From Thalia democratica (Eukaryota): a DNA stretch of 64,000 nt. This document shows positions 21,601-44,600 of this stretch, piece by piece (positions within the stretch are counted from its first letter, which is position 1; the number at the start of each line of letters is the position of its first letter). The notes under the pieces were generated by a model. The model saw nothing but the letters and a program-made list of their open reading frames with translations, made no database searches and was not told where the DNA came from. The translations under genes were made by a program, and so were the position numbers. Location: NCBI GenBank assembly GCA_965202585.1, contig OZ241830.1, positions 8,432,001 to 8,496,000 on the forward strand, written 5' to 3'.

Positions 21601-21937
21601 TTAAAAGACTTATAATTATCAAGGATAGTTTGCATGATAGCTTAATGCTTTCTATTTACTTTGGAGGTTTGGGTGCAGTACAACTTCAATCTTTGTCTAA
21701 ATTTTCACTTAAAAACTTTTTGTAACTCTCGCTGTGTTGATTTTTCAAATGCTCGTGCATGGAATATTGCATACTGCGTAGAGTTATCTTTCTAACATAT
21801 AGTAATATATAGGTCGTAATAGTTTTGTTCTTAAATTATGCTTTCATTTAAATATAACGTTTTATGGATACATAAAAACTGTATTTTAAACTACTATGAA
21901 AAACATGATTTTACAAAATACAAACCAATATATCTTT

Positions 21938-24919
21938 TGTATAAGTATTTACCTAGTTTAACTATGTTTTGTGTTACAGACTTTATCATTCTTGTAATTA
22001 GTTTGTGAATAAACTCAACCAAGAAGGATATATTTATTTATGATAAAGTCAAGCTGAATTAAATTAACAATGCCTGTGAATAAATGCCCTCTTGAGAGTT
22101 GCACATATGAAACACCAGACGTCAATTCTTCTGTAGTTGCCTCTTTGCTTATCACTCACAACAATGTTCACATTAATGCAAATTCTTTAAAACCAAAGCC
22201 TCTAAAGATGGACCGTCCTCGAATAGGGACAGACTGCAATGAAGAGGGTTGGAATATATTTGTACAGAAAATGAACTATTTTTAAAGATAGCATAGAGAT
22301 GACAGAGATGGAAAAACGTCGTAAACTGTACCAGTGCTGTGAGGAAGATTTAGGCGATGCTATTCTGAAAGGACATTAATATGTAGTAAATTTAAGTGAG
22401 CAAGAGCTTTTAAGGATGATTAAGCAGCTTGCAGTTATTCCTGTTTCAGTTGTTGTACGACGATCAGACTTTCTTCGTGCAAGACAGGATTTGACTGAAA
22501 ATACTAGATCATTTGCCGCCCGTTTAAAGGGAAAAGCCTTTACATGCTCGTACACATGTAAATGCCCCAAGGATGGCTGTAATTAAATGATAGATTTTAC
22601 AGACATAATCCTAAAAGATGTCATGGTATTAGGTTTAGTGGATGAGGATATCCGTAAAGAGGTGCTAGGATGGGAAAGTCTAGATGAAAGAAATGTCAAT
22701 GAGACAATCGGTTTTTTTGAAGGAAAAGAGATGGCACGTGATGCAATGTCAAAACCCGCTGTTACAGCCTCAGTTTTCTCATACAAATCCTCAAAGAAAA
22801 TTACATAAAAACCAAGTGGTAAAATAACTTGTGGAATATGTAATAAATCAACTGATAAATTTGTTTAAAGCAGTAAAATTATGAGGTATATTGAGTGTTC
22901 TGCTTGTAAACAATGCTGGATAAAGTCCTGTAAAAAAGTTTATCAAAGTCACCAAAATTATGCCGATAAATCAAATGCACTTGTAGTTGGTGGATTGTAT
23001 ACACCAAATGTATACAAATCCTCAAAGAAAACCACACAAAAACCAAATGGCAAAATAACTTGTGGAATATGTAATAAATCAACTAATAAATTTGTTTGGA
23101 GCAAAATGAGGTATATTGAGTGTTTTGCTTGCAAACAATGCTGGATAAAGTCCCGTAAAAAATTTTATCAAAGTCACCAAAAAAAAGCTGATAAGTTAAA
23201 TGCTCTTCTGGTTGGTGGATTGTCTAAACAAAACTTTGATATCTTTAGCAGCCGAGGTCGTAGGAAAAATATGTTCGAGCGTAAAAACGTCAAGAAGAGA
23301 AAGGAGATACATGGGCAGAAAAGTGTATTTCTACACACTGGATGGCGACGAAAACCGCAAAAATCCCAATGCAATCCTACCCTACCTCCAAATGATAAGA
23401 AGTCATTACCTTACGTCAGAAAGAGTGTTATGACTTACAATAAACCGAAGATCTCAAAAACGTGGCTTGACATTTGGAATAAAAAGAAAGAATCTCTCAG
23501 TACTCGTTTTGTTAAGTCTCTAGAGAATATAAGTAAAAACAAAAAATCTTTGCCACCTTTTAATTGCGGTGATCATGTCGTGATACTAAATCAAACAGGT
23601 AATTTTCCTAGCAAGTGGGGGAAAAGTGGAGTGGTGGTGGAAGTGAAGGACTGTCAACAATGTGTTGTCAAAGTTGATGGATCAAATCGCTTAACTGTTC
23701 AAAATCGTAAGTTTCTGAGAAGATTTACCCCTCCTGTTTGCAAATGTCTAAGTAGTTTTCCTTATCTGAGAAAAGCAAACATACCACTGTTAAACTTTGT
23801 CTTTTCTGGTAAAGTTGAGGAAAAAAAATGTCAAGAAAAGTTTTGATGTTCTGCGTTTCCAGAAGGAAGATTCTTTTTGAATAAGCATTGTGTAATTTCC
23901 CTCTGTACTAATGGTTTTCTTCAAAATTGATGTTGAACTGGAATGGCTCGGATTTGCTTTGATCTATATTTTCTTGACTTAAGCAAACAGACCACCAAAG
24001 TTTACTTTCAAACAATAATGTGTCCGGGATGAGAGTGTGAAATTACCGGATTATTTGCAGCGTTTTCGTGTGAGACTTTATGATGCTTTTCAAAAGCTTC
24101 GTGACACCGATTTTTCTGATATTCATTTATTGTCAAGTTGGAATGTTCACTGTAAATTAATTTTTATTGTCTAACTAATGAATGAGTTTCAGTCTAATGG
24201 TGACGTCATAAAGTTTGTAGTTGACTTTGCAGCAGACTTGTCTAACAGCCATCTGTTCAAAGTAATCTTGGATGAGGACGCAGGGATTGACTTTCAAAAA
24301 TTCGAACTATTAGTTGGTATCGAGTATTTGGAAAATAAGTGTAGCAGTATTCCCTCAGTGTTTAATGCCATCAGTAATGCACATTCTACTTTGTTTGACG
24401 TCGAAATTATGATAAAGATGATTATCGGCAAATTAAGTGAAGTTTCAAGTTAATTAGATGAGTGGCGTGTGGTTTCGTTCTTCAAAGCTGAAAAGTTCAA
24501 ATCGGTGAAGCAATTAAGTTTTTGAATGCTTGCAACCAGTAAATAAATGAAGAAAAGTAAAGAATTAGTAAATTAGAATTAAGTAAAGTCTCAAATTTTT
24601 GTTACTGTTTGTTTGTTATAGTTGTAGTTTGTTATAGCAAATCATTTAACAGTGAACTAAGTTAATCGTGATTTTTTAAATGTTTTTGTCTTCTTGAGTT
24701 TAAATTCGTTGAATTTTAGACCTGAAAAATGCGTTTAAATTGTAATAAATTGTTTTAAAATAATTTTGTTTCACTAGGTAAATTTTTCGTTTTATCTCCT
24801 TCGTAGATAAAATCTGAGGGGAGATGTATAAGTATTTACCTAGTTCAACTATGTTTTGTATTACAGACTTTATCAATCTTGTAATTAGTTTGTGAATAAA
24901 TTCGACCAAGAAAGATATA
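21938..24919 (+). mobile_element. Internally deleted Ty3/Gypsy (Mag-like) LTR retroelement, left arm of palindrome
   Basis: 95-bp direct repeats at 21938-22032 and 24825-24919 start TGTATAAG and contain AATAAA. Polypurine tract GAGGGGAGA at 24816-24824. Interrupted gag from 22070 (KCPLESCTYET...RSFAARLKGKA...LGLVDEDIRKEVL). Integrase C-terminal tail (LPPFNCGDHVVILNQTG...KW...VKVDGSNRLTVQNRKFLR) at ~23550-23730. No RT or RNase H motifs. Confidence 0.8.
22781..23223 (+). repeat. 231-bp tandem duplication of the Cys-rich (CGIC...CxxCxxCW) gag segment
   Basis: atacaaatcctcaaagaaaa at 22781 and 23012; the two units are colinear up to ggattgt. Confidence 0.85.
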
Positions 24920-24970
24920 TATTTATTTATGATAAAGTCTTATTCAATATATTTGAATCTAATAAAAAAT

Positions 24971-27935
24971 TATATCTTTCTTGGTTGAGTTTATTCACAA
25001 ACTAATTACAAGAATGATAAAGTCTGTAATACAAAACATAGTTGAACTAGGTAAATACTTATACATCTCCCCTCAGATTTTATCTACGAAGGAGATAAAA
25101 CGAAAAATTTACCTAGTGAAACAAAATTATTTTAAAACAATTTATTACAATTTAAACGCATTTTTCAGGTCTAAAATTCAACGAATTTAAACTCAAGAAG
25201 ACAAAAACATTTAAAAAATCACGATTAACTTAGTTCACTGTTAAATGATTTGCTATAACAAACTACAACTATAACAAACAAACAGTAACAAAAATTTGAG
25301 ACTTTACTTAATTCTAATTTACTAATTCTTTACTTTTCTTCATTTATTTACTGGTTGCAAGCATTCAAAAACTTAATTGCTTCACCGATTTGAACTTTTC
25401 AGCTTTGAAGAACGAAACCACACGCCACTCATCTAATTAACTTGAAACTTCACTTAATTTGCCGATAATCATCTTTATCATAATTTCGACGTCAAACAAA
25501 GTAGAATGTGCATTACTGATGGCATTAAACACTGAGGGAATACTGCTACACTTATTTTCCAAATACTCGATACCAACTAATAGTTCGAATTTTTGAAAGT
25601 CAATCCCTGCGTCCTCATCCAAGATTACTTTGAACAGATGGCTGTTAGACAAGTCTGCTGCAAAGTCAACTACAAACTTTATGACGTCACCATTAGACTG
25701 AAACTCATTCATTAGTTAGACAATAAAAATTAATTTACAGTGAACATTCCAACTTGACAATAAATGAATATCAGAAAAATCGGTGTCACGAAGCTTTTGA
25801 AAAGCATCATAAAGTCTCACACGAAAACGCTGCAAATAATCCGGTAATTTCACACTCTCATCCCGGACACATTATTGTTTGAAAGTAAACTTTGGTGGTC
25901 TGTTTGCTTAAGTCAAGAAAATATAGATCAAAGCAAATCCGAGCCATTCCAGTTCAACATCAATTTTGAAGAAAACCATTAGTACAGAGGGAAATTACAC
26001 AATGCTTATTCAAAAAGAATCTTCCTTCTGGAAACGCAGAACATCAAAACTTTTCTTGACATTTTTTTTCCTCAACTTTACCAGAAAAGACAAAGTTTAA
26101 CAGTGGTATGTTTGCTTTTCTCAGATAAGGAAAACTACTTAGACATTTGCAAACAGGAGGGGTAAATCTTCTCAGAAACTTACGATTTTGAACAGTTAAG
26201 CGATTTGATCCATCAACTTTGACAACACATTGTTGACAGTCCTTCACTTCCACCACCACTCCACTTTTCCCCCACTTGCTAGGAAAATTACCTGTTTGAT
26301 TTAGTATCACGACATGATCACCGCAATTAAAAGGTGGCAAAGATTTTTTGTTTTTACTTATATTCTCTAGAGACTTAACAAAACGAGTACTGAGAGATTC
26401 TTTCTTTTTATTCCAAATGTCAAGCCACGTTTTTGAGATCTGCGGGTTATTGTAAGTCATAACACTCTTTCTGACGTAAGGTAATGACTTCTTATCATTT
26501 GGAGGTAGGGTAGGATTGCATTGGGATTTTTGCGGTTTTCGTCGCCATCCAGTGTGTAGAAATACACTTTTCTGCCCATGTATCTCCTTTCTCTTCTTGA
26601 CGTTTTTACGCTCGAACATATTTTTCCTACGACCTCGGCTGCTAAAGATATCAAAGTTTTGTTTAGACAATCCACCAACCAGAAGAGCATTTAATTTATC
26701 AGCTTCTTTTTGGTGACTTTGATAAACTTTTTTACGGGACTTTATCCAGCATTGTATGCAAGCAAAACACTCAATATACCTCATATTGCTCCAAACAAAT
26801 TTATCAGTTGATTTATTACATATACCACGAGTTATTTTGCCATTTGGTTTTTGTGTGGTTTTCTTTAAGGATTTGTATACATTTGGTGTATACAATCTAC
26901 CAACTACAAGTGCATTTGATTTATCGGCATAATTTTGGTGACTTTGATAAACTTTTTTACAGGACTTTATCCAGCATTGTTTACAAGCAGAACACTCAAT
27001 ATACCTCATATTTTTACTGCTACAAACAAATTTATGAGTTGATTTATTACATATTCTACAAGTTATTTTACCACTTGGTTTTTATGTAATTTTCTTTGAG
27101 GATTTGTATGAGAAAACTGAGGCTGTAACAGCGGGTTTTGACTATGCATCACGTGCCATCTCTTTTCCTTCAAAAAAACCGATTGTCTCATTGACATTTC
27201 TTTCATCTAGACTTTCCCATCCTAGCACCTCTTTACGGATATCCTCATCCACTAAACCTAATACCATGACATCTTTTAGGATTATGTCTGTAAAATCTAT
27301 CATTTAATTACAGCCATCCTTGGGGCATTTACATGTGTACGAGCATGTAAAGGCTTTTCCCTTTAAACGGGCGGCAAATGATCTAGTATTTTCAGTCAAA
27401 TCCTGTCTTGCACTAAGAAAGTCTGATCGTCGTACAACAACTGCAAGCTGCTTGATCCTCCTTAAAAGCTCTTGCTCACTTAAATTACTACATATTAATA
27501 TCCCTTCAGAATAGCATCCCCTAGATCTTCTTCACATCACTGTTACAGTTGACGGCGTTTTTCTACATCTGTCATCTCTTTGCTATCTTTAAAAATAGTC
27601 CACTTCTGTACAAATATGTTCCAACTCTCTTCATTGCAGTCTGTCCCTATTCGAGGACGGTCCATCTTTGGAGGCTTTGGTTTTAAAGAATTTGCACCAA
27701 TGTGAACATTGTTGTAAATGATAAGCAAAGAGGCAACTACAGAAGAATCGACGTCTGGTGTTTCATATGAGCAACTCTCAAGAGGGCATTTATTCACAGG
27801 CATTGTTGATTCAATTCAGCTTGACTTTATCATAAATAAATATATCTTTCTTGGTTGAGTTTATTCACAAACTAATTACAAGAATGATAAAGTCTGTAAT
27901 ACAAAACACAGTTAAACTAGGTAAATACTTATACA
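24971..27935 (-). mobile_element. Inverted second copy of the Mag-like element, right arm of palindrome
   Basis: LTRs at 24971-25065 and 27841-27935 (both 95 bp). Mirror-image ORFs (26044..27009, 27543..27803, 25437..25712). Confidence 0.8.
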
Positions 27936-27938
27936 AAA

Positions 27939-28070
27939 GATATATTGGTTTGTATTTTGTAATATCATGTTTTTCATAGTAGTTTAAAATACAGTTTTTA
28001 TGGATACATAAAAACTGTATTTTAAACTACTATGAAAAATATGATATTACAAAATACAAACTAATATATC
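27939..28070. repeat. 132-bp near-perfect hairpin (64-bp arms, loop GATA) at the outer edge of the palindrome
   Basis: gatatattggtttgtattttg...acagtttttatg | gata | cataaaaactgt...caaaatacaaactaatatatc; two mismatches seen. Confidence 0.9.
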
Positions 28071-29004: not shown

Positions 29005-29414
29005 CAGGGTTGCTAAATCTTTTTAGAAAATTTTCTCCAGGTTTTTAAAAAATCCTCCAGGCTTTCGGAAGTACACACTTTTGTATCTATTTGTAGTTTA
29101 AAGTTTATTTTGAGGTTAAAAACTGTGTTAAATTGTATGCCAACATTCAAAAGATACTGTTAACCTACTTTAAAACTGTTTTTAAAAAAAAAAATGATGA
29201 TACTAAAAAAAATCTATAACCTATATGATAGATTTCTTTGTGTCAAATCAAAATTGTACTACTTAATATCTAAAATTGGTTAAAATTATAGGTTTTTTAG
29301 TAATTTTTGTTCAAAACTCCAAGTAATTTTTTTTATTTCAAAAATTCAAGATTTTTCCAGGTATTTTAGTCTAAATTGTAAATTTCCAAAGTAATAGGTT
29401 TTTCGGCAACCCTT
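29005..29414. mobile_element. hAT-like MITE with CAGGGTTGC...GCAACCCT ends
   Basis: cagggttgc at 29005; ggcaaccct at 29405-29413. Confidence 0.6.
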
Positions 29415-29517
29415 TAAAGATAACGATATAACTTAAGTTGTTTTTAGATTTTGTTTTCATAGAAATCTTTTATTCCAAAAAGTAGAACATCAAAAAAGTA
29501 AAAAAACGTCAAAAAAT

Positions 29518-29870
29518 TGTGAGTTACGCATTTGGTGGACCAACATCCAAAATCTCAGTTGGGTCTGGCTGACTGTCTGTGGGAAGATTGTCAACCTGAC
29601 CTTTTTGCCCATATTTTTCCTGCAGACGGGGTGACTTCCTAGCACGTTTATGCTTAGGACCCTCTGCGGGCAGTTTGGTACTTGTATTATTTAAACTAGA
29701 CATAATAAAAATAAAATTGTTTTATTTATCAAACTTATTATAATGTATCAGTGAATTTTATCTATCAATACTTAAGACTATTTTAGACTACTTTATATAA
29801 ATTAGGCAATATAGTATGGTGATTTATTATACAAAAGAACCATGCAACAGTTTTATAAAATTTCTTAATC
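29518..29870 (-). mobile_element. Old, diverged LTR remnant of the Gag-CSD family
   Basis: Aligns with 36302-36640. The minus-strand frame from ATG 29703 gives MSSLNNTSTKLPAEGPKHKRARKSPRLQEKYGQKGQVDNLPTDSQPDPTEILDVGPP, colinear with the N-terminus of the 694-aa ORF. Ends ...CTCACA at 29518 with no PBS after it. Confidence 0.8.
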
Positions 29871-30567: not shown

Positions 30568-30728
30568 AAGTGGTCTACCGAGTCCAAAATTTTTGATTCG
30601 GCAAAATCCGAATCTAAGTCTTATTTTGAAATTTTATATTCGGCCGAATCCGAGTCCGAGTCTTATTTTGAAATTAGGATTCGGCCGAGTCTGAATCCGA
30701 GTCCAAGTCTTGGATTCGGTAGATCACA
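30568..30728. mobile_element. Complete ~160-bp MITE of the TAGTGATCTACCG family
   Basis: agtggtctaccga ... tcggtagatcaca inverted ends; internal ccgagt/ccgaat repeats. Confidence 0.65.
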
Positions 30729-31029
30729 AATAAAAACATATTTATAAGTTACGTTTAAAAAGTAATCCTAAAACTTAGAGTTTTACTACCTTTTGTGTAA
30801 CGAAAACAAAATACAATTAATATTTTTGATAGTTTCAACACAAAAGTATCAGATTTAAAATAAACTATTAGTTTATTTTAGATAATAAAGTAAGACTATA
30901 CAGCAGACACTTAAAATATTCTAAAAAAAGTGTGAAAAATATTCCGTGGTATTAACATGGATGAGCATATAAAAAATATGTTTTGATCTGAAAATCATTA
31001 AAATGTAAACATTTGAGAAAAAAAAACTG

Positions 31030-31801
31030 TGTAATGAATACGTGCATTATTCATTATTCAAAGTTGAGCTCAGAGAATATTTTGAGTTTGACACGCTTCA
31101 TTGCACTAGCCAATGAGAATCATCTGACGTGTTTCAAACTAATTCTGATGCAACTAAATATCAGAAAAGGACAGTCAGTGTATTTGTAAGCAGTTGGTGA
31201 GTTGGTGTGCAGCTGGAACTACCTTGTATTGAATTGTGATTGTGTATTGTAAGTATTGTTTTGTGTTAAAAGTGAACATTTTAACTGGTATTTAATTGTT
31301 TTAATATTTAAGCCAGGTTTATAGTTAATAGTTTATTCTTTTACAGTTTCTTCTTTACTAAAAGTTTTATTAAATTTTTAGTTTATTGTTTAAAGTCTTT
31401 TAAAGAGATTTAAATAGATTGTAGTTTCTAAAAAGTTTGTCATAGTAATTTATAGTTTTGTATATGCTTTTATTTCTTGTTTTGTTTTATATAAAGAGTC
31501 ATCACTTAAAACTGTCTGTCTGATTTATATATAATAGTCTAGAGTAGCTTTAAGTGTTTTATATATTTTCCACTGATAATTACAAATTAGCACTTATAAA
31601 TAAGTTATAGTACTATGTCCCACTTAGAGAATATTAATGATAAGTTGCCTGCAGCGGGTCCTGAAAATAAGCCTGTTAGAAGGTCACCCCGCTTGCAGGA
31701 AAAGTCTGAACAAAAAGGTCAGGTTGACTATCTGCCCACAGTAAGTCACCCTGACCAAACTGAGGCTTTAGATGTTGGGTCACCAACATCGGTAGCCCAC
31801 A
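31030..31801 (+). repeat. 5' LTR, variant A (772 bp); contains the ORF start codon at 31615
   Basis: TG...CA ends; direct repeat of 39572-40343; CCAAT (~31111) and a TGACGT motif (~31125) in the upstream part. Confidence 0.92.
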
Positions 31802-31802
31802 A

Positions 31803-31820
31803 TGGCGTCCTCGGGTGGGC
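31803..31820 (+). promoter_or_regulatory. 18-nt primer-binding-site / tRNA copy, complementary to a tRNA-Asn(GUU)-type 3' end
   Basis: TGGCGTCCTCGGGTGGGC lies 1 nt after the LTR. Its reverse complement GCCCACCCGAGGACGCCA matches 16/18 of the human tRNA-Asn 3' end as I recall it (GCCCACCCAGGGACGCCA). Confidence 0.85.
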
Positions 31821-32074
31821 TACCGATGTTGGTATCAGTGTAATAACAGAAGCAAAAGACACAATAATGTAGGTTGGCAGGAAAACCAAAATCTGTTTCA
31901 TAATAACCACAGTAGTAACAAGCCTAATCAAAATTACTGTAGGCTAGAAGGTACAAATAATGGCAGAGTCCACTATAACTACAAGACCCAAGACAATAAC
32001 CATGATGTAAATGATTATCATCCAAACCATAATATTTCTAAAGTACATGGAAAAAATGATAGAACAGTAAAATC

Positions 32075-33023
32075 GTCACCAACATCGGTAGCCCACAATG
32101 GCGTCCTCTTAAGTAGTGAGAACTACCAATCTTTAAACCAACAGTTAAATAAGTCAGAGTTTGAGGAAAATAAGATACAAACCACTTGTAATAAAATTGG
32201 GCCCTACAGAATTGAAAATGAAAGTAAGGTAAGCACCAATAGGCAGCAGCAGGCTTTAGATTATGAAAGTGCACTAGAAGTGGAAGACTTGGAGATAGAG
32301 AAACTCACAAAGCTAGTAGCCCAAGCTAAAATTTTAGAAAAGAAGGCCATCTTAAAAAAGGAATTAAACTCTATTTATAATAGATTAGATGAAGGTCAAA
32401 ACAAATTCCAAAGTAAGATAAGTTATAGTGATAGCAGTCCTGTATATACTTCTTCCAACACTGTAGGGGCTACACATAACATCAGTCTGAAACAAAGGAC
32501 TTTAGAGAACTGCAAACTTTTTCCCCAGATTGAAGCCATAAGGGACCCTGTTATTGAGTTAAGATTTTTTGAGGATAGGTGTAGTACTTATGGCATCACT
32601 GATGATACAGAAAAGTTTGAAATTCTTCAAAGAATCTGGCCGCGTGCTGACATAATAGACTTTGTTGAAGCTTATGATGAGGACCGAACATACTACAATT
32701 TGTTTAAATTTTTAGAAGGCAAAGGCAGTAAGTTGCCTCGAATCTTAGGTGTGAGCCCATCATGGTCGGGACCAGTAAAATTTCAAAACTTGTTTCTGTC
32801 AGCCAAACAATGGGCAAGAGCAGCTGAGGAAGACAGAATTAAATATTTTATGTATGTACATGCCCCAGATAATCTGAAAAAGAAAATTAAAGAATGCTTT
32901 GGGCTTGGTTATAATGAGTTCTTAAGACGGGCTGAATCAATATGCAACATTGAAGAACAGAGAGTTGTAGAGCAAGCCAAACATGTTTCGTATGAACCTC
33001 ACAAACCATACTATGGTAGGAAC
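32075..33023 (+). pseudogene. Truncated Gag-like body (variant A), broken at GGTAGGAAC before the CSD
   Basis: Begins with the last 23 nt of the LTR plus a 10-nt PBS. Nearly identical to 37065-37993. Ends at a fold-back junction. Confidence 0.85.
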
Positions 33024-33039
33024 GATGTTGATAGCCCAT

Positions 33040-36000
33040 TGTGGGCTATCGATGTTGGTGGCCCAACATTTAAAGCCTCAGTTTGGTCAGGGTGACTTAC
33101 TGTGGGCAGATAGTCAACCTGACCTTTTTGTTCAGACTTTTCCTGCAAGCGGGGTGACCTTCTAACAGGCTTATTTTCAGGACCCGCTGCAGGCAACTTA
33201 TCATTAATATTCTCTAAGTGGGACATAGTACTATAACTTATTTATAAGTGCTAATTTGTAATTATCAGTGGAAAATATATATAAAACACTTAAAGCTACT
33301 CTAGACTATTTTATATAAATCAGACAGACAGTTTTAAGTGATGACTCTTTATATAAAACAAAACAAGAAATAATAGCATATACAAAACTATAAATTAGTA
33401 TGACAAACTTTTTAGAAACTACAATCTATTTAAATTTCTTTAAAAGACTTTAAACAATAAACTAAAAATTAAATAAAACTTTTAGTAAAGAAGAAACTGT
33501 AAAAGAATAAATTTTTAACTATAAACCTGGCTTAAATATTAAAACAATTAAATACCAGTTAAAATATTCACTTTTAACACAAAACAATTCTTACAATACA
33601 CAATCACAAAACAAGTTCAATATGTTGTTGCTTCCAGCTGCACACCAACTCACCAACTGCTTACAAATCCACTGACTGTCATTTTCTGATATTTAGTTGC
33701 ATCAGAATTAGTTTGAAACACGTCAGATGATTCTCATTGGCTAGTGCAATGAAGCGTGTCAAACTCAAAATAATGACAATGCAAGGAAATTTGCACTGTC
33801 ATTACACTTCCTCTTCTTCCCTTCTCTTTTGGAAGAGGATCCTCACTCCTTCTTCTTCTCTCCTGCTAGCAGAATTCTAAGATTGTGTTCCCCGAAACCT
33901 AATTGGTAAACAGCAAAAAAAACCAAAATAAAGGAACAGTGTAACGCATAAATAAATTCAAACTAGTCAGTAACTAATTTAAAAATCAAATTGAAATAGA
34001 ATATTAATAGGAGAGAGAAAAATTAAGTATTTGGTTTTCTTATAATAAAAAAAATTATATAATAACATAAGTTTTATCAGAATAACTAACTCAGTAAAAA
34101 AATCTTAGACAACATGGTAAAAAAAAAAAAAAAAATGGTATCAACATAATAGTATTTGCACAATAAATAAAATAAAATATCAATAAATTTACAGTTACAA
34201 TTCCAAATATTATTTTTACTATAAATAGATAAACAACTCTTAATCAAAATATTAAACTCAAAAAAAAATCTTTGGCAATATAGTATCAATTGGTATTAGA
34301 ATCAAAATTTTTTCACAAAAAAAAAAAAAAAAAACACATGTTTAGTCATACAGAATCATCACTCAACTGTCATGCCTAACTTAACCCTAGAATACAAAGA
34401 ATTTTAAGTCAGCCTTTCTAAAACTTTATTTCTTAATTTGTCAATTCTAAGTTTAATATTTTCAACATGTTCTTCAATTTTTAGACCTTCTTTAATCAAC
34501 TCATCTTTTTCTGAAATTAATTTCAGAATCTCACTCTGAGGTTTAACCTGTTCATTTTTATTGCTATTAGGTTGATAGCCTGTAGAGTTAACTTTTAATA
34601 AATCATTTTGAGAATTAGTATGGGTGCTTTCTTTTGAAAATTGTCTATCATCAGTTACTTCAACCTTATGGGTTAATTGGTGGTTGTGTTTTACCTTACA
34701 ACTGTTTTGCTCTTCTCTCTGCTGTTTGTCTCTTACTTTACAACCACTGACAAAATAACATTTTAGTTGAGGCCTCTGTTGCCTGTTAAACCTCTGGTTA
34801 TAGCTTGGCCACCTGTCTTGGGCATATTTGGAACCTTTAACTGGTTTGTTATTAGGACCTGTTACATTCACAGCCTGTGGTAAATTTCTTTTACTCATTA
34901 CAACATTAAATTGAACAGCCTCACCTTGTGCAAGTGACCTTATAAACTTGTTCGGGTTGTTTTTACTAATTTCAGTGTGATGAACAAAAACATCACTGTT
35001 CTTATTATCACAATGAATGAATCCATAGCCCTTTTTAACATTAAACCACACAACTCGGCCTGTTACTCCATATGCTGTAATTTTTCTGGGAGCTTTAGGT
35101 TTAAATTTTTGTGCCTTTCTGGTTGAATGTACTGAATTAATTTTAGTCATTGCAAATTTACAGTGTTTTACTGTTCTGTTATTACCTTCATGTGGTGAAG
35201 TATTTTGGTTTTGATAGCCTTCATTTTGTTTGTTGTCATAGTGGTTTCTGTCATTATTTGTACATTGGTTGTCTCCCAGCCTATAGTACTCTTGATTAGG
35301 GTGGTTACTACTGTGGTTATTATAAAAAAAATTTTGATTTTGCTGCCAACCTACATTATTGTGACTCTTACTTCTGTACCTACCATAGTATGGTTTGTGA
35401 GGTTCATATGAAATATTTTTGACTTGTTCACAAACTTTCTGTTCTTCAATGTTGCATATTGATTCAGCCCGTCTTAAGAACTCATTATAACCAAGCCCAA
35501 AACATTCTTTAATTTTCTTTTTCAGATTATCTGGGGCATGTACATACATAAAATATTTAATTCTGTCTTCCTCAGCTGCTCTTGCCCATTGTTTGGCTGA
35601 CAGAAACAAGTTTTGAAATTTTACTGGTCCCGACCATGATGGGCTCACACCTAAGATTCGAGGCAACTTACTGCCTTTGCCTTCTAAAAATTTAAACAAA
35701 TTGTAGTATGTTCGGTCCTCATCATAAGCTTCAACAAAGTCTATTATGTCAGCACGCGGCCAGATTCTTTGAAGAATTTCAAACTTTTTTGTATCATCAG
35801 TGATGCCATAAGTACTACACCTATCCTCAAAAAATCTTAACTCAATAACAGGGTCCCTTATGGCTTTAATCTGGGGAAAAAGTTTGCAGTTCTCTAAAGT
35901 CCTTTGTTTCAGACTGATGTTATGTGTAGCCCCTACAGTGTTGGAAGAAGTATATACAGGACTGCTGTCACTATAACTTATCTTACTTTGGAATTTGTTT

Positions 36001-37064
36001 TGACCTACATCTAATCTATTATAAATAGAATTTAATTCCTTTTTTAAGATGGCCTTCTTTTCTAAAATTTTAGCTTGGGCTACTAGCTTTGTGAGTTTCT
36101 CTATCTCCAAGTCTTCCACTTCTAGTGCACTTTCATAATCTAAAGCCTGCTGCTGCCTATTGGTGCTTACCTTACTTTCATTTTCAATTCTGTAGGGCCA
36201 ATTTTTATTACAAGTGGTTTGTATCTTATTTTCCTCAAACTCTGACTTATTTAACTGTTGGTTAAAGGATTGGTAGTTCTCACTACTTAAGAGGACGCCA
36301 TTGTGGGCTACCGATGTTGGTGGCCCAACATCTAAAGCCTCAGTTGGGTCAGGGTGACTTACTGTGGGCAGATAGTCAACCTGACCTTTTTGTTCAGACT
36401 TTTCCTGCAAGCGGGGTGACCTTCTAACAGGCTTATTTTCAGGACCCGCTGCAGGCAACTTATCATTAATATTCTCTAAGTGGGACATAGTACTATAACT
36501 TATTTATAAGTGCTAATTTGTAATTATCAGTGGAAAATATATATAAAACACTTAAAGCTACTCTAGACTATTTTATATAAATCAGACAGACAGTTTTAAG
36601 TGATGACTCTTTATATAAAACAAAACAAGAAATAATAGCATATACAAAACTATAAATTAGTATGACAAACTTTTTAGAAACTACAATCTATTTAAATTTC
36701 TTTAAAAGACTTTAAACAATAAACTAAAAATTAAATAAAACTTTTAGTAAAGAAGAAACTGTAAAAGAATAAATTTTTAACTATAAACCTGGCTTAAATA
36801 TTAAAACAATTAAATACCAGTTAAAATATTCACTTTTAACACAAAACAATTCTTACAATACACAATCACAAAACAAGTTCAATATGTTGTTGCTTCCAGC
36901 TGCACACCACTCACCAACTGCTTACAAATCCACTGACTGTCATTTTCTGATATTTAGTTGCATCAGAATTAGTTTGAAACACGTCAGATGATTCTCATTG
37001 GCTAGTGCAATGAAGCGTGTCAAACTCAAAATAATGACAATGCAAGGAAATTTGCACTGTCATT
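33040..37064 (-). mobile_element. Complete inverted element, variant B (~4.0 kb): LTR-PBS-ORF-PPT-LTR
   Basis: LTRs at 36302-37064 (first 3 nt missing) and 33040-33806. PBS TGGCGTCCTC at 36300-36291. Polypurine tract AAAAGAGAAGGGAAGAAGAGGAAG at 33830-33807, directly before TGTAATGAC. Confidence 0.92.
34404..36488 (-). CDS. 694-aa Gag-like protein fused to a Y-box-type cold-shock domain
   Basis: Intronless ORF. CSD with RNP1 KGYGFI, RNP2 DVFVHH, the Y-box-specific KNNP insert and the C-terminal extension VTGPNNKPVKGSKYAQDR (YB-1: VTGPGGVPVQGSKYAADR). Upstream helical region FFEDRCSTYGITDDTKKFEIL...TYYNLFKFL resembles Gypsy Gag capsid N-terminal domains (inferred). N- and C-terminal coiled-coil-like segments. 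Confidence 0.88.
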   Translation of the reverse strand: MSHLENINDKLPAAGPENKPVRRSPRLQEKSEQKGQVDYLPTVSHPDPTEALDVGPPTSVAHNGVLLSSENYQSFNQQLNKSEFEENKIQTTCNKNWPYRIENESKVSTNRQQQALDYESALEVEDLEIEKLTKLVAQAKILEKKAILKKELNSIYNRLDVGQNKFQSKISYSDSSPVYTSSNTVGATHNISLKQRTLENCKLFPQIKAIRDPVIELRFFEDRCSTYGITDDTKKFEILQRIWPRADIIDFVEAYDEDRTYYNLFKFLEGKGSKLPRILGVSPSWSGPVKFQNLFLSAKQWARAAEEDRIKYFMYVHAPDNLKKKIKECFGLGYNEFLRRAESICNIEEQKVCEQVKNISYEPHKPYYGRYRSKSHNNVGWQQNQNFFYNNHSSNHPNQEYYRLGDNQCTNNDRNHYDNKQNEGYQNQNTSPHEGNNRTVKHCKFAMTKINSVHSTRKAQKFKPKAPRKITAYGVTGRVVWFNVKKGYGFIHCDNKNSDVFVHHTEISKNNPNKFIRSLAQGEAVQFNVVMSKRNLPQAVNVTGPNNKPVKGSKYAQDRWPSYNQRFNRQQRPQLKCYFVSGCKVRDKQQREEQNSCKVKHNHQLTHKVEVTDDRQFSKESTHTNSQNDLLKVNSTGYQPNSNKNEQVKPQSEILKLISEKDELIKEGLKIEEHVENIKLRIDKLRNKVLERLT

Positions 37065-38967
37065 CCACAATGGCGTCCTCTTAAGTAGTGAGAACTACCA
37101 ATCTTTAAACCAACAGTTAAATAAGTCAGAGTTTGAGGAAAATAAGATACAAACCACTTGTAATAAAATTGGGCCCTACAGAATTGAAAATGAAAGTAAG
37201 GTAAGCACCAATAGGCAGCAGCAGGCTTTAGATTATGAAAGTGCACTAGAAGTGGAAGACTTGGAGATAGAGAAACTCACAAAGCTAGTAGCCCAAGCTA
37301 AAATTTTAGAAAAGAAGGCCATCTTAAAAAAGGAATTAAACTCTATTTATAATAGATTAGATGAAGGTCAAAACAAATTCCAAAGTAAGATAAGTTATAG
37401 TGATAGCAGTCCTGTATATACTTCTTCCAACACTGTAGGGGCTACACATAACATCAGTCTGAAACAAAGGACTTTAGAGAACTGCAAACTTTTTCCCCAG
37501 ATTGAAGCCATAAGGGACCCTGTTATTGAGTTAAGATTTTTTGAGGATAGGTGTAGTACTTATGGCATCACTGATGATACAGAAAAGTTTGAAATTCTTC
37601 AAAGAATCTGGCCGCGTGCTGACATAATAGACTTTGTTGAAGCTTATGATGAGGACCGAACATACTACAATTTGTTTAAATTTTTAGAAGGCAAAGGCAG
37701 TAAGTTGCCTCGAATCTTAGGTGTGAGCCCATCATGGTCGGGACCAGTAAAATTTCAAAACTTGTTTCTGTCAGCCAAACAATGGGCAAGAGCAGCTGAG
37801 GAAGACAGAATTAAATATTTTATGTATGTACATGCCCCAGATAATCTGAAAAAGAAAATTAAAGAATGCTTTGGGCTTGGTTATAATGAGTTCTTAAGAC
37901 GGGCTGAATCAATATGCAACATTGAAGAACAGAGAGTTGTAGAGCAAGCCAAACATGTTTCGTATGAACCTCACAAACCATACTATGGTAGGAACAGAAG
38001 CAAAAGACACAATAATGTAGGTTGGCAGGAAAACCAAAATCTGTTTCATAATAACCACAGTAGTAACCAGCCTAATCAAGAGTACTATAGGCTGGGAGAC
38101 AACCAATGTACAAATAATGACAGAAACCACTATGACAACAAACAAAATGAAGGCTATCAAAACCAAAATACTTCACCACATGAAGGTAATAACAGAACAG
38201 TAAAACACTGTAAATTTGCAATGACTAAGATTAATTCAGTACATTCAACCAGAAAGGCACAAAAATTTAAACCTAAAGCTCCCAGAAAAATTACAGCATA
38301 TGGAGTAACAGGCCGAGTTGTGTGGTTTAATGTTAAAAAGGGCTATGGATTCATTCATTGTGATAATAAGGACAGTGATGTTTTTGTTCATCACACTGAA
38401 ATTAGTAAAAACAACCCGAACAAGTTTATAAGGTCACTTGCACAAGGTGAGGCTGTTCAATTAAATGTTGTAATGAGTAAAAGAAATTTACCACAGGCTG
38501 TGAATGTAACAGGTCCTAACAACAAACCAGTTAAAGGTTCCAAATATGCCCAAGACAGGTGGCCAAGCTATAACCAGAGGTTTAACAGGCAACAGAGGCC
38601 TCAACTAAAATGTTATTTTGTCAGTGATTGTAAAGTAAGAGACAAACAGCAGAGAGAAGAGCAAAACAGTTGTAAGGTAAAACACAACCACCAATTAACC
38701 CATAAGGTTGAAGTAACTGATGATAGACAATTTTCAAAAGAAAGCACCCATACTAATTCTCAAAATGATTTATTAAAAGTTAACTCTACAGGCTATCAAC
38801 CTAATAGCAATAAAAATGAACAGGTTAAACATCAGAGTGAGATTCTGAAATTAATTTCAGAAAAAGATGAGTTGATTAAAGAAGGTCTAAAAATTGAAGA
38901 ACATGTTGAAAATATTAAACTTAAAATTGACAAATTAAGAAATAAAGTTTTAGAAAGGCTGACTTAA
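37065..38967 (+). CDS. 5'-truncated Gag-CSD copy (lacks the native ATG; open frame to TAA 38967)
   Basis: Starts at CCACA + PBS. The 571-aa ORF in the track uses a GTG. The CSD is intact apart from a few substitutions (N>D, F>L). Confidence 0.8.
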
Positions 38968-39571
38968 AATTCTTTGTATTCTAGGGTTAAGTTAGGCATG
39001 ACAGTTGAGTGATGATTCTGTATGACTAAACATATGTTTTTTTTTTTTTTTTTTTTTTTGTGAAAAAATTTTGATTCTAATACCAATTGATACTATATTG
39101 CCAAATATTTTTTTTTTGAGTTTAATATTTTGATTAAGAGTTGTTTATCTATTTATAGTAAAAATAATATTTGGAATTGTAACCGTAAATTTATTGATAT
39201 TTCATTTTATTTATTGTGCAAATACTATTATGTTGATACCATTTTTTTTTTTTTACCATGTTGTCTAAGATTTTTTTTACTGAGTTAGTTATTCTGATAA
39301 AAATTATGTTATTATATAAATTTTTTTTATTATGTGAAAACCAAATACTTAATTTTTCTCTCTCCTAGTTAATATTCTACTTAAGTTTGATTTTTAAATC
39401 AGTTCATGACTATTTTGAATTTATTTGATCTTTACACTGTTCCTTTTATTTTGTTTTTTTGCTGTTTACCAATTAGATTTAGGTGAACATCACCTTAGAA
39501 TTCTTCTAGCAGGAGGCAAGCAGAGGATAGAGTGATAATCCTCTTCAAAAAAAAAGGACTACAGAAGATAG

Positions 39572-40343
39572 TGTAATGAATACGTGCATTATTCATTATT
39601 CAAAGTTGAGCTCAGAGAATATTTTGAGTTTGACACGCTTCATTGCACTAGCCAATGAGAATCATCTGACGTGTTTCAAACTAATTCTGATGCAACTAAA
39701 TATCAGAAAAGGACAGTCAGTGTATTTGTAAGCAGTTGGTGAGTTGGTGTGCAGCTGGAACTACCTTGTATTGAATTGTGATTGTGTATTGTAAGTATTG
39801 TTTTGTGTTAAAAGTGAACATTTTAACTGGTATTTAATTGTTTTAATATTTAAGCCAGGTTTATAGTTAATAGTTTATTCTTTTACAGTTTCTTCTTTAC
39901 TAAAAGTTTTATTAAATTTTTAGTTTATTGTTTAAAGTCTTTTAAAGAGATTTAAATAGATTGTAGTTTCTAAAAAGTTTGTCATAGTAATTTATAGTTT
40001 TGTATATGCTTTTATTTCTTGTTTTGTTTTATATAAAGAGTCATCACTTAAAACTGTCTGTCTGATTTATATATAATAGTCTAGAGTAGCTTTAAGTGTT
40101 TTATATATTTTCCACTGATAATTACAAATTAGCACTTATAAATAAGTTATAGTACTATGTCCCACTTAGAGAATATTAATGATAAGTTGCCTGCAGCGGG
40201 TCCTGAAAATAAGCCTGTTAGAAGGTCACCCCGCTTGCAGGAAAAGTCTGAACAAAAAGGTCAGGTTGACTATCTGCCCACAGTAAGTCACCCTGACCAA
40301 ACTGAGGCTTTAGATGTTGGGTCACCAACATCGGTAGCCCACA
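39572..40343 (+). repeat. 3' LTR, variant A (772 bp), preceded by an imperfect purine tract (39547-39571)
   Basis: Direct repeat of 31030-31801; followed by the ACTG TSD and unrelated flank. Confidence 0.92.
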
Positions 40344-41649
40344 ACTGCTTATTATTGGTTCGGTTTTTTGAAGCTAAAAAATAAATAAAAGAAATTTTTG
40401 GATATATTTAGTCCTTACTAATAATTTAATTAGATGTAAATTTGATGAAAATTAAAAATGCAGAAAACAGATAACTAAAGGTTATCGATTAAAAAAAAAG
40501 CTCCAAGTCGCAAGCGGATCCATAGTTTCTTAGCTTAAATTTACTAAAAAGACAGTTTAATGTTAAACTTTAAATTAAATTCAAAACTTTTTTAAACATT
40601 TTTATGAAGAATAAAATTAATGAAGCTAAAAAGTCGTAAAACTAAATTATTGATGCAAAGTATATCTTTTTAGCTCTACAAAAATAGTAACTAATAAATA
40701 AGTTTATTTTCAAATAAGTATAAAAAGTAAATCGTGACTAATAAATATTTTGTAACTTTAAGATTTTAGGTTATTAAACTTGTGAAATTTCAATTACATT
40801 TATAAGGTATTTAAACGAGCACTTATTTGTATGTATTCTATGACCATTAGTTGATTGGTCAAACTAAAACCTAATTTTTTAGCTTTTAGCAATAAAAAAA
40901 TAATTGAGTAAAGATTTTTAGCTTATAAAATAAACGGTTTGTAATAAGTTATGAATTTATTCTCGAGATCTGTTCTTAGATGTAAGTTGATAGTTAAACA
41001 CATCTTGTCGTTAAAGTTACATTTAAATTAGTTCCATACTTTAATAAAATATATTACAGACGAAACTTCCTAGAAAACTATTCTATTATATAGTATTATT
41101 GAATACTTACAATTAAACCCTTATATACTGTAATAAACCTTTTAATAATTACTTAAAAACAGTTAAACTTTTAGACCTAGGTTAATTGTATTGAAACGTG
41201 TGCTCAAAATTATTTTCGAAGTATTAAAAATATGTTTTCTAAAAATTTTACGGAAGTTTAATATGTATCTAAAAGAACTTATATCAAAATTTAGTTTTAA
41301 TGTTTTGATCGACCTTATAAACCATTACTTTGACAGTTAAAGTTCGTTTTATCTGTATTTCGAAAATTTTAACAAAACCGCTGTGCAAATGATTTAAAGC
41401 TAACTGGTATGTTTTAGTTGGCTGCACAAAATGAAGAAAAAAATTTAATAAAGTTTGTTCATATACCCATGTGTTTAGGTTTGTAAATTTAATATTTTTT
41501 TTAATATTTAGCATATCTAAAACTAATAATTTTAAAAAGTGACTTTAAACTAAAATTTAAAATTCAAAAGTTAAAGATTTTTTATAAGGTTATTTTTACT
41601 ACTATAAGGTATAATTCAAAATGTCTTTCTTATCTTGTATCTGTTGTGA

Positions 41650-44600
41650 TATTTATGATAATATCAATAAACGCAACGTAATAAACCAATTATTCTTTTG
41701 TCATAACTTAATCAATTTAATTGTTATTTGTTTTTCTTCCTTTCGATTAAAAGCTGAACTGCTTATCTAAATTTACCGACAGAGACAAGCGGTATTTTAA
41801 GGATTTTTGGCACATTATCATAGATAAAATTTCTTAAAACCACAAACACTCAGATAACTTAAAAAAGACACTTTATTTCTGCAACTGTAACACTGAATCA
41901 TATATCGGCAGTATAGAGGCTATGAATTTACTTAAAAACCTTACTACATGGCCCTTGCTTAATTTAAGTTTTATTTTTACCTTGATTGTTTATAGCAATA
42001 CAAAAGTGTTAAACACCAATGAGTAATGAAAAGTAAATTTACTATGAATCGGTGAATATTAACTATTTTTCAAACATATATAAGTATTTGCCAACGATTA
42101 CCAGTCAAAAATTTGAAATTGTGTACATTTTATTGAACATTTTAGTAAATTTTATAGCTACCAAAAAAACTTTCAGAATATTTGTAAACATAAAATATAC
42201 ACTAACTACTATTCATATATGTACTAATACTTATAAAGGCTTTTTAAAGCTTGATGCTTTATTTGTATCTTTTCAAAACACTTTATTTGAATAAAGGTGC
42301 TACATCTATGTAATACAAACACTTATTTAAAAAAAATAATCACTATTTTTTTAATCAATTTATTTGATCTGGGTCCGGCCGTACCGTAATTGAAATCCGG
42401 ATCTATTTTAAAACAATATCAAGCTAGAGCCGGTAGATCAATAGGTATAAGTCATAAAGTGGAAAGATATGAGTTTAGTTTATGGTAGGCAACGTACGGT
42501 ACAAACCAACTGACATTTATGGTGTGCAATTTTAGGGTTGTGTGAATTTTATGCCAATCAAACACTATAGATCATTTTAGTAATAAATGTTTTTAAAGTG
42601 CCTTTAAAACACAGTGATGCTTGTTAAAAATTTCTCCCATGTAGTGTTAATGAGTTATTTTAAGAGTTTAAAGAATATTATAATTAATTTTCTCCGCCGA
42701 CCAAGATGTGTTTCTAACAATCTGTTCGAGTCTTAAAAAGTTTTTTGTTGTCCTGTTTAAAAAAGTTGTCCATTCCAAAGTTATTTGATATGTGATGCAA
42801 GTATATACTATTTTTTATATAAGTTTAAAGTTTTTGTTATTCTAAAACACCCACGCAAAGTTTATATTACAAGTATAAAAAAATAAACGTCATGAAAGAC
42901 TTAATTAAAATATCAACAGTAATTAAGAGTATTATCTTTTTCTTAATTTCTTATAAACAGTAACTGTAGAACAGGAATTCCCAAAGGGGGCCACATGGTC
43001 TTCTTTGGAACAAGTTCAGGAAATTTGGGGGCAATAAGATAAAAAAGTTCCAAAGGGTGGCGTAAGTAGTAAGCGGGTCATTGGGCCATTTAACATATAA
43101 AGTAAAGCTTACACAAGATATTTTGGAGTTTATGATGAAAATATAAAAAAATATCTTAATGCGGTTTACAGTTTTTTTCAAAATAATAATGTTAAATTAA
43201 CGAAGGTTCTTAAAATATTAGAAGGCCATAGGCTTGCATACGGTTGTAATTTTAACTTAGACTACTAAATTTTTAGCCGTTAATGATAATTGGTGTAGTT
43301 AATATAAGTTGTTTCAGAACTAAGGGTTTACAACTTTATTAGACTCTTTTGAGACTCTTATAAGCTTTATAATACTCTTTTTTATAAAAAAAGAAAAGAA
43401 TAACCCTTGTGTACAAAAAGAAACAGTAAAATTGTACAAAATGATTACATAAATTAAATATATTCTGTGTACAACTTGTTATTAATAAATCTATCACTGT
43501 AAAAATAAAAACTGTAACCAGAGCTTAAATAATTTTTACAACCAAAATAAAAAATTTTGAATTTATTTAATACGAGTAGAAGAACGTAAGATAACTTTTT
43601 TTTTGCGCTCTGACCTAATAAAAAATAAATTAGCTGGATTACTCATCCAACTTAACACCAAGAGCGTGCATATCAGCAGTGACTCGCTCCAAATAAGTCG
43701 CATCCGGATACCCATATGGTCCACCGTAAAGAGAAGTCTTGTGATGGATATCATTCCAAGTTATCACGTTCCTCTCTCCACTGCTCAAACTAGTACCAAC
43801 TGTGAAAGTCAACTTCATCTTCCAGGCTTTTTTGAACAGCTCAAGAACCCTTCTACCTTCTTCGTTGTCAGGCAGGTATGCTGTTCTATGATCACCATAA
43901 TACCTAGCTCCCGGGTTTCCATGCTGGGGTCCTTGTACTCCACCAAGAAGGTCGTATTGAATCTGAATAATTCCACAGTCTTCGTAGCCTGCACAATGCA
44001 TGATTTTACAAGTTTTTACTTTCATGTAGCCATCTGGGCATGGACCAAGCTTCTCTACAATAACAGCACGACATACAGGACACTTGTGACTTTGCTTTAA
44101 AACGTCTATCAGACACTTTTCATGAAAGATATGCTCGCAAACACCTGTACCTTTTATCGTTCCGTTTTCTTTTAAAGGACATAAACAAACTGCACAGTTG
44201 TCATTAATATTTTCATCAATAAGTGCAACTTCGACACCATCAAAGTTTTGTCCGGCTGATTTTTTATTCTTTCTATCAAAGTTTGCGAACTTTCCTTCAT
44301 TTCTAAAATCACCTCCCGGCATCCCAAAGCCCATACTTGATACAATATGTTGCAAATGTGAATGAAAACTACTAGGAACGGAATTTAGTATTGATGTGTT
44401 ATTCACTAAATTCATGTATGAGTTGAGCACGTGATTTTTAAATGGTGTCGCTGATGCACTTGAAGGTTGAGGATTTCGCTGACTATTTTGTTGCTGACCT
44501 CCACTGGTTGATACTTTTTGACTGGAATTTTTCGGCTGCTGTGTTTTGCTACCTCTGATAAATTTTTAGTTACAAAGTTATTAGTTATCTTCGTATAAAA

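Follow-up and report, generated by a model that had tools for sequence, protein, structure and literature searches.

Background

Zinc knuckles of the nucleocapsid (NC) are treated as a near-universal feature of Gag in the long terminal repeat (LTR) retroelements. Among the non-autonomous members of this class are the TR-GAG elements, which are gag-only LTR retrotransposons of plants, and BARE2 of barley, a similar gag-only non-autonomous element. Here we describe a gag-only element of about 4 kb from the marine zooplankter Thalia democratica, in which the Gag protein carries a host-type cold-shock domain (CSD) of the Y-box kind at the place where its relatives have a zinc knuckle. The element lies in a stretch of 64,000 nucleotides (nt) from GenBank assembly GCA_965202585.1 (contig OZ241830.1, positions 8,432,001 to 8,496,000 of the forward strand), which was analysed as a whole and is referred to below as the window. 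Like TR-GAG, the element has LTRs, a primer-binding site (PBS), a polypurine tract, a lone gag open reading frame (ORF), no pol and a presumed autonomous partner that shares its LTRs. It differs from TR-GAG in living in a zooplankter and not in a plant, and in having a Gag that lacks the Cys/His knuckle and bears a host-type CSD and a new tail; we know of no TR-GAG Gag that has been described with a foreign RNA-binding domain.

Replication-defective transducing retroviruses with fusions of Gag to host genes, and the maize element Bs1, are dependent on helpers, and the origin that we would propose for the present element is similar to theirs, i.e., host-derived coding sequence would have been fused in frame to Gag in place of part of gag and pol, with dependence on a helper as the result. 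The captured domain of the present element differs from theirs in sharing a biochemical role with the part that it would have displaced, and in having been selected through a deep diversification of the element family, unlike a one-off event. Two further systems are instructive at the level of the protein: ORF1p of LINE-1, which consists of a coiled coil, an RNA-recognition motif and a C-terminal domain, and Lin28, which combines a CSD with two CCHC knuckles. The first illustrates that general cellular RNA-binding folds can act as a retroelement RNA chaperone and the second that a CSD and retroviral-type knuckles do related jobs; however, ORF1p belongs to non-LTR elements that have no capsid-type Gag, and Lin28 is encoded by a host gene and does not belong to a mobile element.

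The CsRn1 clade of Ty3/gypsy elements is defined by a CHCC signature in Gag, CX2HX9CX3C (PMC2582038). The autonomous relatives of our element resemble this clade in having a conserved Gag that ends in a CHCC-type motif and a pol in the order protease, reverse transcriptase (RT), RNase H, integrase. In a comparison by Gag motif they differ from it in that their version is mostly CX2HX9CX4-5C, and the element itself differs in having no CHCC of any kind. Captured CSDs (pfam00313) are described in 46 endogenous retroviruses (ERVs) of birds, where they occupy varying positions and repeated captures have been inferred (PMC12287698). The bird ERVs and our element are thus alike as retroelements bearing a host-type CSD; the bird ERVs differ in being pol-bearing and classified by their RT, and in the text consulted the CSD is not reported as a replacement of the knuckle or as part of a gag-only element. 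The literature, with Repbase, Dfam and GyDB outside the scope of the search, yielded no published Gag-CSD or Gag-KH LTR retrotransposon. The original prediction for this locus, which was made from the sequence alone, came with the remark that no described Gag-CSD family was known; this stands for gag-only elements and for knuckle replacement and has to be qualified by the CSDs of the 46 bird ERVs.

The element and its cis-acting signals

The element is embedded in a larger composite of related LTR sequences, to which we return below, and is therefore called the inner element. Its parts, in the coordinates of the window, are the following.

33040 to 37067, (-) strand: inner gag-only LTR element, about 4 kb, the main find
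36302 to 37067, (-) strand: inner 5' LTR, 766 nt, holding the ORF start codon and the first ~62 codons
36283 to 36300, (-) strand: PBS, 1 nt past the 5' LTR and within the ORF
34404 to 36488, (-) strand: Gag-CSD ORF, 694 amino acids (aa), intact
33807 to 33830, (-) strand: polypurine tract of 24 purines, adjoining the 3' LTR
33040 to 33806, (-) strand: inner 3' LTR, TGTAATGA...CCCACA, 767 nt

The LTRs, PBS and polypurine tract confirm that 33040-37067 is an LTR retrotransposon. The two inner LTRs are 99.35% identical and both terminate in CCCACA; the 3' LTR opens with TGTAATGA, and the initial bases of the 5' LTR, which run into an inverted LTR-end/PBS junction, differ from the TGT opening of the other LTRs. 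The PBS is TGG-initiated, begins TGGCGTCCTC and occurs three times in the window against 0.04 occurrences expected; its first 6 nt agree with those of two distant autonomous relatives (on contigs L002 and L005), after which the sequences diverge. The 694-aa ORF is the sole long ORF of the inner element. Its ATG lies ~187 nt inside the 5' LTR and its frame runs on through the PBS, and the distant autonomous relatives likewise have their start codon in the LTR and a frame that crosses the PBS. Between the stop codon and the polypurine tract there are ~600 nt of non-coding, T-rich sequence; no poly(A) trace of a captured mRNA was found in this 3' untranslated region (UTR), which holds T-rich tracts only.

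It is also confirmed that the element is gag-only and has none of the four pol activities (protease, RT, RNase H, integrase): with the pol proteins of two Ty3/gypsy elements as queries (55% identical to each other, E <= 0.01), tblastn found no remnant of pol in the whole window. An exact look-up of the 694-aa ORF returned no recorded match. Scans of the window for tRNA genes and Rfam families were empty, and its base composition, ~28% G+C, is that of AT-rich eukaryotic DNA. The ~4-kb element with its LTRs, PBS and polypurine tract, and its single 694-aa ORF without pol, are thus borne out as originally predicted.

Layout of the protein and the cold-shock domain

Three regions of the 694-aa protein are central to what follows.

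35394 to 36113, (-) strand: conserved Gag core, aa 126-365, made up of a long helix and then an all-helical capsid-like domain
34812 to 35093, (-) strand: Y-box-type CSD with its C-terminal extension, aa 466-559
34410 to 34541, (-) strand: C-terminal amphipathic helix, aa 650-693, under stronger constraint than the rest of the tail

A full-length AlphaFold model predicts the following succession.

residues 1-125: disordered
residues 110-162: long helix
residues 188-357: all-helical domain
residues 359-464: disordered
residues 470-543: five-stranded barrel
residues 554-649: disordered
residues 650-693: helix

The sole Pfam match of the ORF is to the CSD family (PF00313, aa 476-544, E 3e-20). 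Among PDB sequences the top matches are zebrafish and human YB-1 and human YBX2 (aa 466-559, E ~5e-26), in an alignment that takes in the Y-box-specific extension beyond the barrel, and weaker matches to plant CSD, bacterial Csp and Lin28 follow at 1e-13 to 1e-7 (Lin28 at 1e-7 and bacterial Csp at 1e-9 to 1e-10 in the same comparison). The modelled barrel superposes on the CSD-RNA complexes of YB-1 and YBX2 with template modelling (TM) scores of 0.86-0.94, and aromatic residues of the RNP1 and RNP2 types are retained in all seven element CSDs. The CSD modules of the elements are 45-53% identical to a vertebrate YBX-like protein. By these comparisons the domain is of the Y-box kind, as the original prediction had proposed, and is closer to the Y-box proteins than to Lin28 or bacterial Csp. 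The homology to YB-1 and YBX2 stops at aa 559, so that the resemblance to Y-box proteins is confined to the CSD and its short extension; a different, disordered tail with a final helix comes after them, and the Ala/Pro-rich N-terminus and the alternating basic and acidic C-terminal clusters of full-length Y-box proteins are not features of the ORF. The CCHC knuckle was likewise rightly said to be missing, as regular-expression scans of the 694-aa protein found no CCHC, CHCC or CCCH pattern, and neither the ORF nor any CSD-bearing relative gave a strict or loose match to the retroviral CX2CX4HX4C.

Gag homology and knuckle-bearing relatives

With residues 60-460 as the query, eight Gag relatives were found at E 1e-93 to 1e-221, all of them from ENA assemblies. 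Five of the eight (P0004-P0008) are proteins of 395-406 aa that have no CSD and are 53-57% identical to the ORF over its residues ~126-365. Two of these (P0005 and P0006, on Tara Oceans contigs) are encoded directly upstream of, and overlap, a 1152-aa pol in which a weak aspartic protease, RVT_1, RNase H, Integrase_H2C2 and rve follow one another in the order of Ty3/gypsy. The Gag alignment has ~100 invariant columns within residues 127-362. On this direct homology we assign the N-terminal two thirds of the ORF as a true Gag of a Ty3/gypsy lineage. An exhaustive profile search of 1.8 billion representatives returned just 78 proteins at E <= 1e-3, so that the Gag family is small and lineage-restricted; when the Gag alignment was run against JGI metagenome contigs and against IMG/VR, no relatives turned up, and no Pfam Gag family was matched by the window Gag or by 10 relatives.

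Nine CSD-less relatives carry the motif CX2HX9CX3-6C, with a last spacing of mostly 5, and a PMA motif then follows. Homology between the Gags of the CSD type and those of the CHCC type extends to about residue 365-385. Past this point, the CHCC-type Gags have a short stretch rich in N, Q and Y, then the CHCC knuckle and the last part of gag, and the CSD-type Gags have a longer N/Q-rich linker, a conserved short motif, the CSD, the tail and the terminal helix. The CSD accordingly stands where the relatives carry their knuckle, in agreement with its predicted location at the point where NC would follow the capsid-like region. Knuckle and CSD are mutually exclusive among the Gags of the family, and a KH-bearing Gag described below also lacks the knuckle. 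We hold the architecture of the protein and its assignment to this family with high confidence.

The conserved short motif ahead of the CSD was considered as a possible remnant of the CHCC knuckle and rejected; an hhalign comparison of CHCC tails with pre-CSD junctions gave a probability of 0.1%. Four relatives (P0009, P0021, P0052 and P0086) are full-length Gags of the family that have neither a knuckle nor a CSD or other captured domain, and one of them, P0052, retains a PMA-type motif and the usual C-terminal end. These Gags show that loss of the knuckle took place more than once within the family.

The capsid-like region was also modelled separately. An AlphaFold2 model of residues 110-375 is confident, with a predicted local distance difference test (pLDDT) score of 81, and all-helical, and its top four Foldseek matches in the PDB are the rat Arc C-terminal domain and the dArc1 and dArc2 capsids, at weak scores (E 0.36-3, TM 0.34-0.37); the capsid proteins of murine leukaemia virus and copia rank lower in the same list. 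Nothing meaningful was found for this domain in BFVD, and a profile search of PDB sequences found nothing. For the capsid-like middle region that had been predicted, the model is thus no more than suggestive of a capsid fold: the four leading matches are all Arc or dArc, and none of their E values is below 0.36.

Copies, selection and expression

The same uninterrupted ORF for Gag, linker, CSD and tail is present in the window and in ENA metagenome, JGI and Logan assemblies, at 73% to 99% identity, and the junction between Gag and CSD is common to lineages down to 24% Gag identity. At 90% clustering, the cluster around P0002 has 37 members, with at least nine distinct intact ORFs of 696-698 aa. 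The several intact copies that had been predicted therefore exist in other assemblies, and within the window a complete ORF with its start codon is found in one copy only.

The ratio of nonsynonymous to synonymous divergence (dN/dS) between the window ORF and the ORF of contig L001, taken region by region, is as follows.

whole ORF: dN/dS 0.37
Gag core: dN/dS 0.17
CSD: dN/dS 0.32
terminal helix: dN/dS 0.11
linker: dN/dS 0.68
tail: dN/dS 0.80

When the CSD module is compared with those of deeper lineages, dN/dS is 0.17 and 0.24, at a synonymous divergence (dS) of about 0.8-1.3. Codon comparisons of this kind show that the Gag core, the CSD and the terminal helix evolve under purifying selection.

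The element is transcribed. An intact 696-aa ORF is present on a contig of run ERR1719457, and on its JGI counterpart, and the ERR1719457 contig spans the element from LTR position 164 to shortly before the polypurine tract. This run is a Tara poly(A) metatranscriptome from surface water of station 92, 180-2000 um (PMC5785536 supplement). The metagenomic contigs with runs in the Tara tables come from stations 68, 80, 93 and 128, all at 180-2000 um (the run of contig L008 is absent from the tables). This size fraction points to a host of mesozooplankton size, probably an animal.

Deeper lineages and possible exchange of the cassette

A search with the CSD plus the tail adds the lineages P0088, P0089 (on contig L009) and P0092 with P0093 (on contig L010). 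In L010 the gag of P0092 and P0093 is in two pieces, and the 2.3 kb downstream are without pol. P0089 (L009:2276-2953) is a free-standing ORF of 225 aa that consists of a CSD, a tail and a terminal helix and is 52% identical to the corresponding cassette of the window; no gag was found in the 2.2 kb upstream of it in L009, and three readings of it are possible: the donor gene of the host, a copy that has been co-opted, or an element truncated at its 5' end.

The CSD modules of the elements are 60-91% identical to each other, and ~20-45 residues that are not of Y-box type flank the CSD on each side and are common to the element lineages; the Gag cores that bear these modules are only 24% identical. 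By these alignments the cassette of linker, CSD and tail is clearly of single origin. The Gag of P0092 is sister to that of the CSD-less P0052 (56% identity, bootstrap 100), and the window Gag groups with CHCC Gags at 73-75% identity. Along the ORF, the synonymous divergence of the window copy from L001 amounts to 0.57 for the Gag core, 0.13 for the CSD and 0 for the part that the LTR encodes. A cassette of single origin, cores that are 24% identical and a synonymous divergence as uneven as this together suggest that the cassette has repeatedly recombined onto whichever autonomous LTR-gag front ends were available. Recombination onto different Gag/LTR backbones would be the simplest reading, the alternative being independent captures from one host gene that carried the same flanks. 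It is a tentative idea, and one that could well be wrong, that the nucleic-acid-binding end of Gag is a swappable slot and that the linker-CSD-tail cassette is itself the persistent parasite.

P0034 (621 aa, L008:88-1953, from a Tara metagenome) has the Gag core of the family (E 1e-14) and, in the slot of the knuckle, a KH didomain (Pfam KH_1 E 1e-17; KH of IGF2BP1 E 2e-9) that resembles those of IGF2BP, FUBP and PCBP. It is known from a single contig and is the single member of its cluster. Its Gag is sister to the CHCC Gag of an autonomous element (L014), and no pol was found in the 540 nt downstream. With the KH didomain, a host RNA-binding module would have entered the slot for a second time and independently. 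With two pol queries at E 0.01, no pol was found in the contigs of the CSD type and the KH type.

A possible pol-bearing partner

Two contigs bear on the source of the enzymes that the element lacks. L001 reads, in order, the C-terminus of a pol, a 3' UTR, an LTR and a 698-aa gag-CSD ORF; this pol C-terminus is 76% identical to that of L002, and ~195 nt of the 3' UTR together with the LTR are common to L001 and the window element. In L006 the order is gag-CSD, LTR, a second gag with an autonomous-type end and the start of pol, and the second gag shows 91% DNA identity to ~codon 365, from which point it has the autonomous-type end, with one premature stop. L001 and L006, which are short-read contigs with collapsed LTRs, join the element to pol-bearing sequence by way of a shared LTR and 3' UTR, as would be expected of a non-autonomous element and its helper. 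Whichever way the joins arose, the two contigs show that the same samples contain pol-bearing sequence whose LTR, 3' UTR, PBS and gag front end are essentially those of the element.

The composite locus around the element

The inner element sits inverted within a composite of 9.3 kb, which is made up as follows.

31030 to 40343, (+) strand: composite bounded by two identical LTRs, 9.3 kb
31030 to 31801, (+) strand: outer 5' LTR, TGTAATGA...CCCACA, 772 nt, 100% identical to the outer 3' LTR
31802 to 33039, (+) strand: left arm, a rearranged partial copy
37065 to 39571, (+) strand: right-hand copy, with the last bases of an LTR, PBS, gag-CSD, 3' UTR and polypurine tract
39572 to 40343, (+) strand: outer 3' LTR, 772 nt
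29516 to 29808, (-) strand: older related LTR fragment, 73-80% identity, a separate insertion

A 4-bp duplication, ACTG, flanks the composite (31026-31029 and 40344-40347), and both this duplication and the 100% identity of the outer LTRs agree with what had been predicted; the integration of the composite is recent. The left arm holds a PBS stub, short LTR-end stubs in inverted and direct orientation, a misplaced piece of the gag linker region and the 5' part of gag, and its gag copy, truncated and rearranged, is not in the reading frame of the start codon that the LTR encodes. Over 931 bp the left arm matches the beginning of the right-hand copy at 100% identity. The right-hand copy is 95.7% identical to the inner element and is open for aa 62-694 with no stops; it is without a 5' LTR and start codon of its own.

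A clean nested insertion was considered as the origin of the composite and is ruled out by the junctions and by the perfect 931-bp duplication. Retrotransposition of an already rearranged unit is possible and would account for both the identical outer LTRs and the fresh duplication of the target. At both junctions of the inner element, short inverted copies of the LTR end lie beside PBS stubs, and the LTR end itself contains a hairpin-forming inverted repeat. The junction pattern might have come from aberrant strand transfers in reverse transcription, although the arrangement could not be traced to a single event. It is also possible that the perfect 931-bp duplication is an artefact of assembly or amplification; the window also holds a 99%-identical palindrome with 2.5-kb arms. 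This palindrome (21847-28026) is near-perfect, with arms at 22444-24933 and 24957-27446 that are 99% complementary around a 23-nt spacer, and with weaker extensions outside both arms. Each arm holds a 321-aa ORF (22881-23846 on the (+) strand and 26044-27009 on the (-) strand; 97% identical, no Pfam or NCBIfam match), and the palindrome may be a genuine inverted duplication or a product of amplification or assembly. Just upstream of the composite, at 30587-30711, a 42-nt unit is repeated three times in tandem at 64-83% identity.

Proposed mechanism and alternatives

The ancestor of the element would have belonged to a Ty3/gypsy lineage in which Gag normally ends in a CHCC zinc knuckle. From this autonomous parent the element would have kept the LTRs, the PBS, the polypurine tract and the last ~195 nt before the 3' LTR, and, from the parental gag, the 5' part that encodes the N-terminal region, the long helix and the helical, capsid-like domain. 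In place of the gag end that codes for the knuckle, and of all of pol, it would have gained ~1.4 kb that code for a disordered N/Q-rich linker, the Y-box-type CSD, a disordered tail and the C-terminal helix. The CSD may have come from the YBX gene of the host by way of an mRNA, in line with the retrocopied Y-box exon of the original prediction. Element RNA would be copied and integrated in trans by the RT and integrase of the partner, and the Gag-CSD protein would co-assemble with partner Gag through the conserved capsid-like core. The CSD, an OB-fold that binds and chaperones single-stranded RNA, would take over the RNA-binding and annealing role of the parental knuckle. We cautiously favour this full mechanism, including the substitution of the CSD for NC, at a level of confidence slightly better than even.

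Several points weigh against it. The relatives that have neither knuckle nor CSD weaken the notion of replacement, and it appears from them that the family can do without a recognisable nucleic-acid-binding module. The match to a capsid fold stays below significance (Foldseek E 0.36-3). A target-site duplication specific to the inner element is missing, and the short contigs gave no readable independent insertion sites. The joins in L001 and L006 may be paths of the assembly graph and not true neighbours, and a full-length partner was not recovered.

According to the first alternative, the element is a gag-only parasite that carries the CSD as accessory cargo, and the CSD does not take the place of the nucleocapsid. 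Such a CSD might stabilise the element mRNA or regulate its translation, as cellular Y-box proteins do, or it might compete with helper Gag for RNA. If several relatives manage with neither knuckle nor CSD, a dedicated RNA-binding module is perhaps dispensable; ~100 disordered residues part the CSD from the capsid-like core; and the bird ERVs, whose CSDs lie at varying genome positions (PMC12287698), show that a CSD can ride along without replacing NC. Yet in the present family the CSD is always C-terminal to the Gag core, in the slot that is held by CHCC in the relatives and never alongside a knuckle, and in P0034 the same slot is filled by an unrelated RNA-binding module, the KH didomain. 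We consider the cargo explanation rather unlikely, though deserving of serious attention.

The second alternative is that Gag-CSD is a family co-opted by the host, either domesticated in the manner of Arc and PNMA or acting as a restriction-like factor, and not the protein of a mobile element. A domesticated gene would be expected to show purifying selection and expression just as the element does, and the free-standing CSD-plus-tail ORF of L009 (P0089), with no gag upstream, could be read in the same way. The setting of the ORF is nonetheless that of a mobile element: it starts inside an LTR, the LTRs on either side of it are 99.35% to 100% identical and are accompanied by a PBS, a polypurine tract and a 4-bp duplication that is fresh, and it is found as many sequence variants, at high read depth, at several ocean stations. 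Co-option of the whole family is accordingly improbable. That the fusion is an artefact of chimeric assembly, or a dead one-off rearrangement, might be thought from the rearranged locus with its 100% identical 931-bp duplication and from the palindrome of 2.5-kb arms at 99% identity in the same window, and is effectively refuted by the independent recovery of the same ORF in the window and in the ENA, JGI and Logan assemblies.

Other features of the window

Two ORFs encode Deltex-type E3 ligases with a RING and a Deltex C-terminal domain (137-1036 on the (+) strand, E 1e-48; 43639-44430 on the (-) strand, E 1e-50). Paralogues of them are numerous in the same metagenomes (55-78% identity), and for a Deltex-type gene near the element the best named matches reach no more than 47% identity and come from scattered taxa; the many paralogues and the lack of a close named relative suggest a lineage-specific expansion. 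The window also holds a kinase fragment and two pairs of dispersed repeats that are unrelated to the element (41660-42000 against 2696-3036, inverted, 87% identity; 29027-29298 against 16215-16486, 75% identity).

Significance

Set against the near-universal status of the knuckle, the present elements would constitute a family that has gone without it and that has in its place a structurally unrelated RNA chaperone fold of host type, selected through a deep diversification; a sister branch appears to have done likewise with KH domains. If this is true, the RNA-binding function of Gag is modular, and simple decay is not the only course open to non-autonomous elements, whose structural protein can gain new features. 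It would also follow that elements dependent on a helper may survive by moving a cassette of their own, through recombination, from one helper backbone to a new one. Domesticated Gag genes and the CSD captures of bird ERVs can be set beside this family for comparison, and it provides a concrete, abundant and expressed example from the ocean zooplankton, whose mobile elements are almost undescribed.

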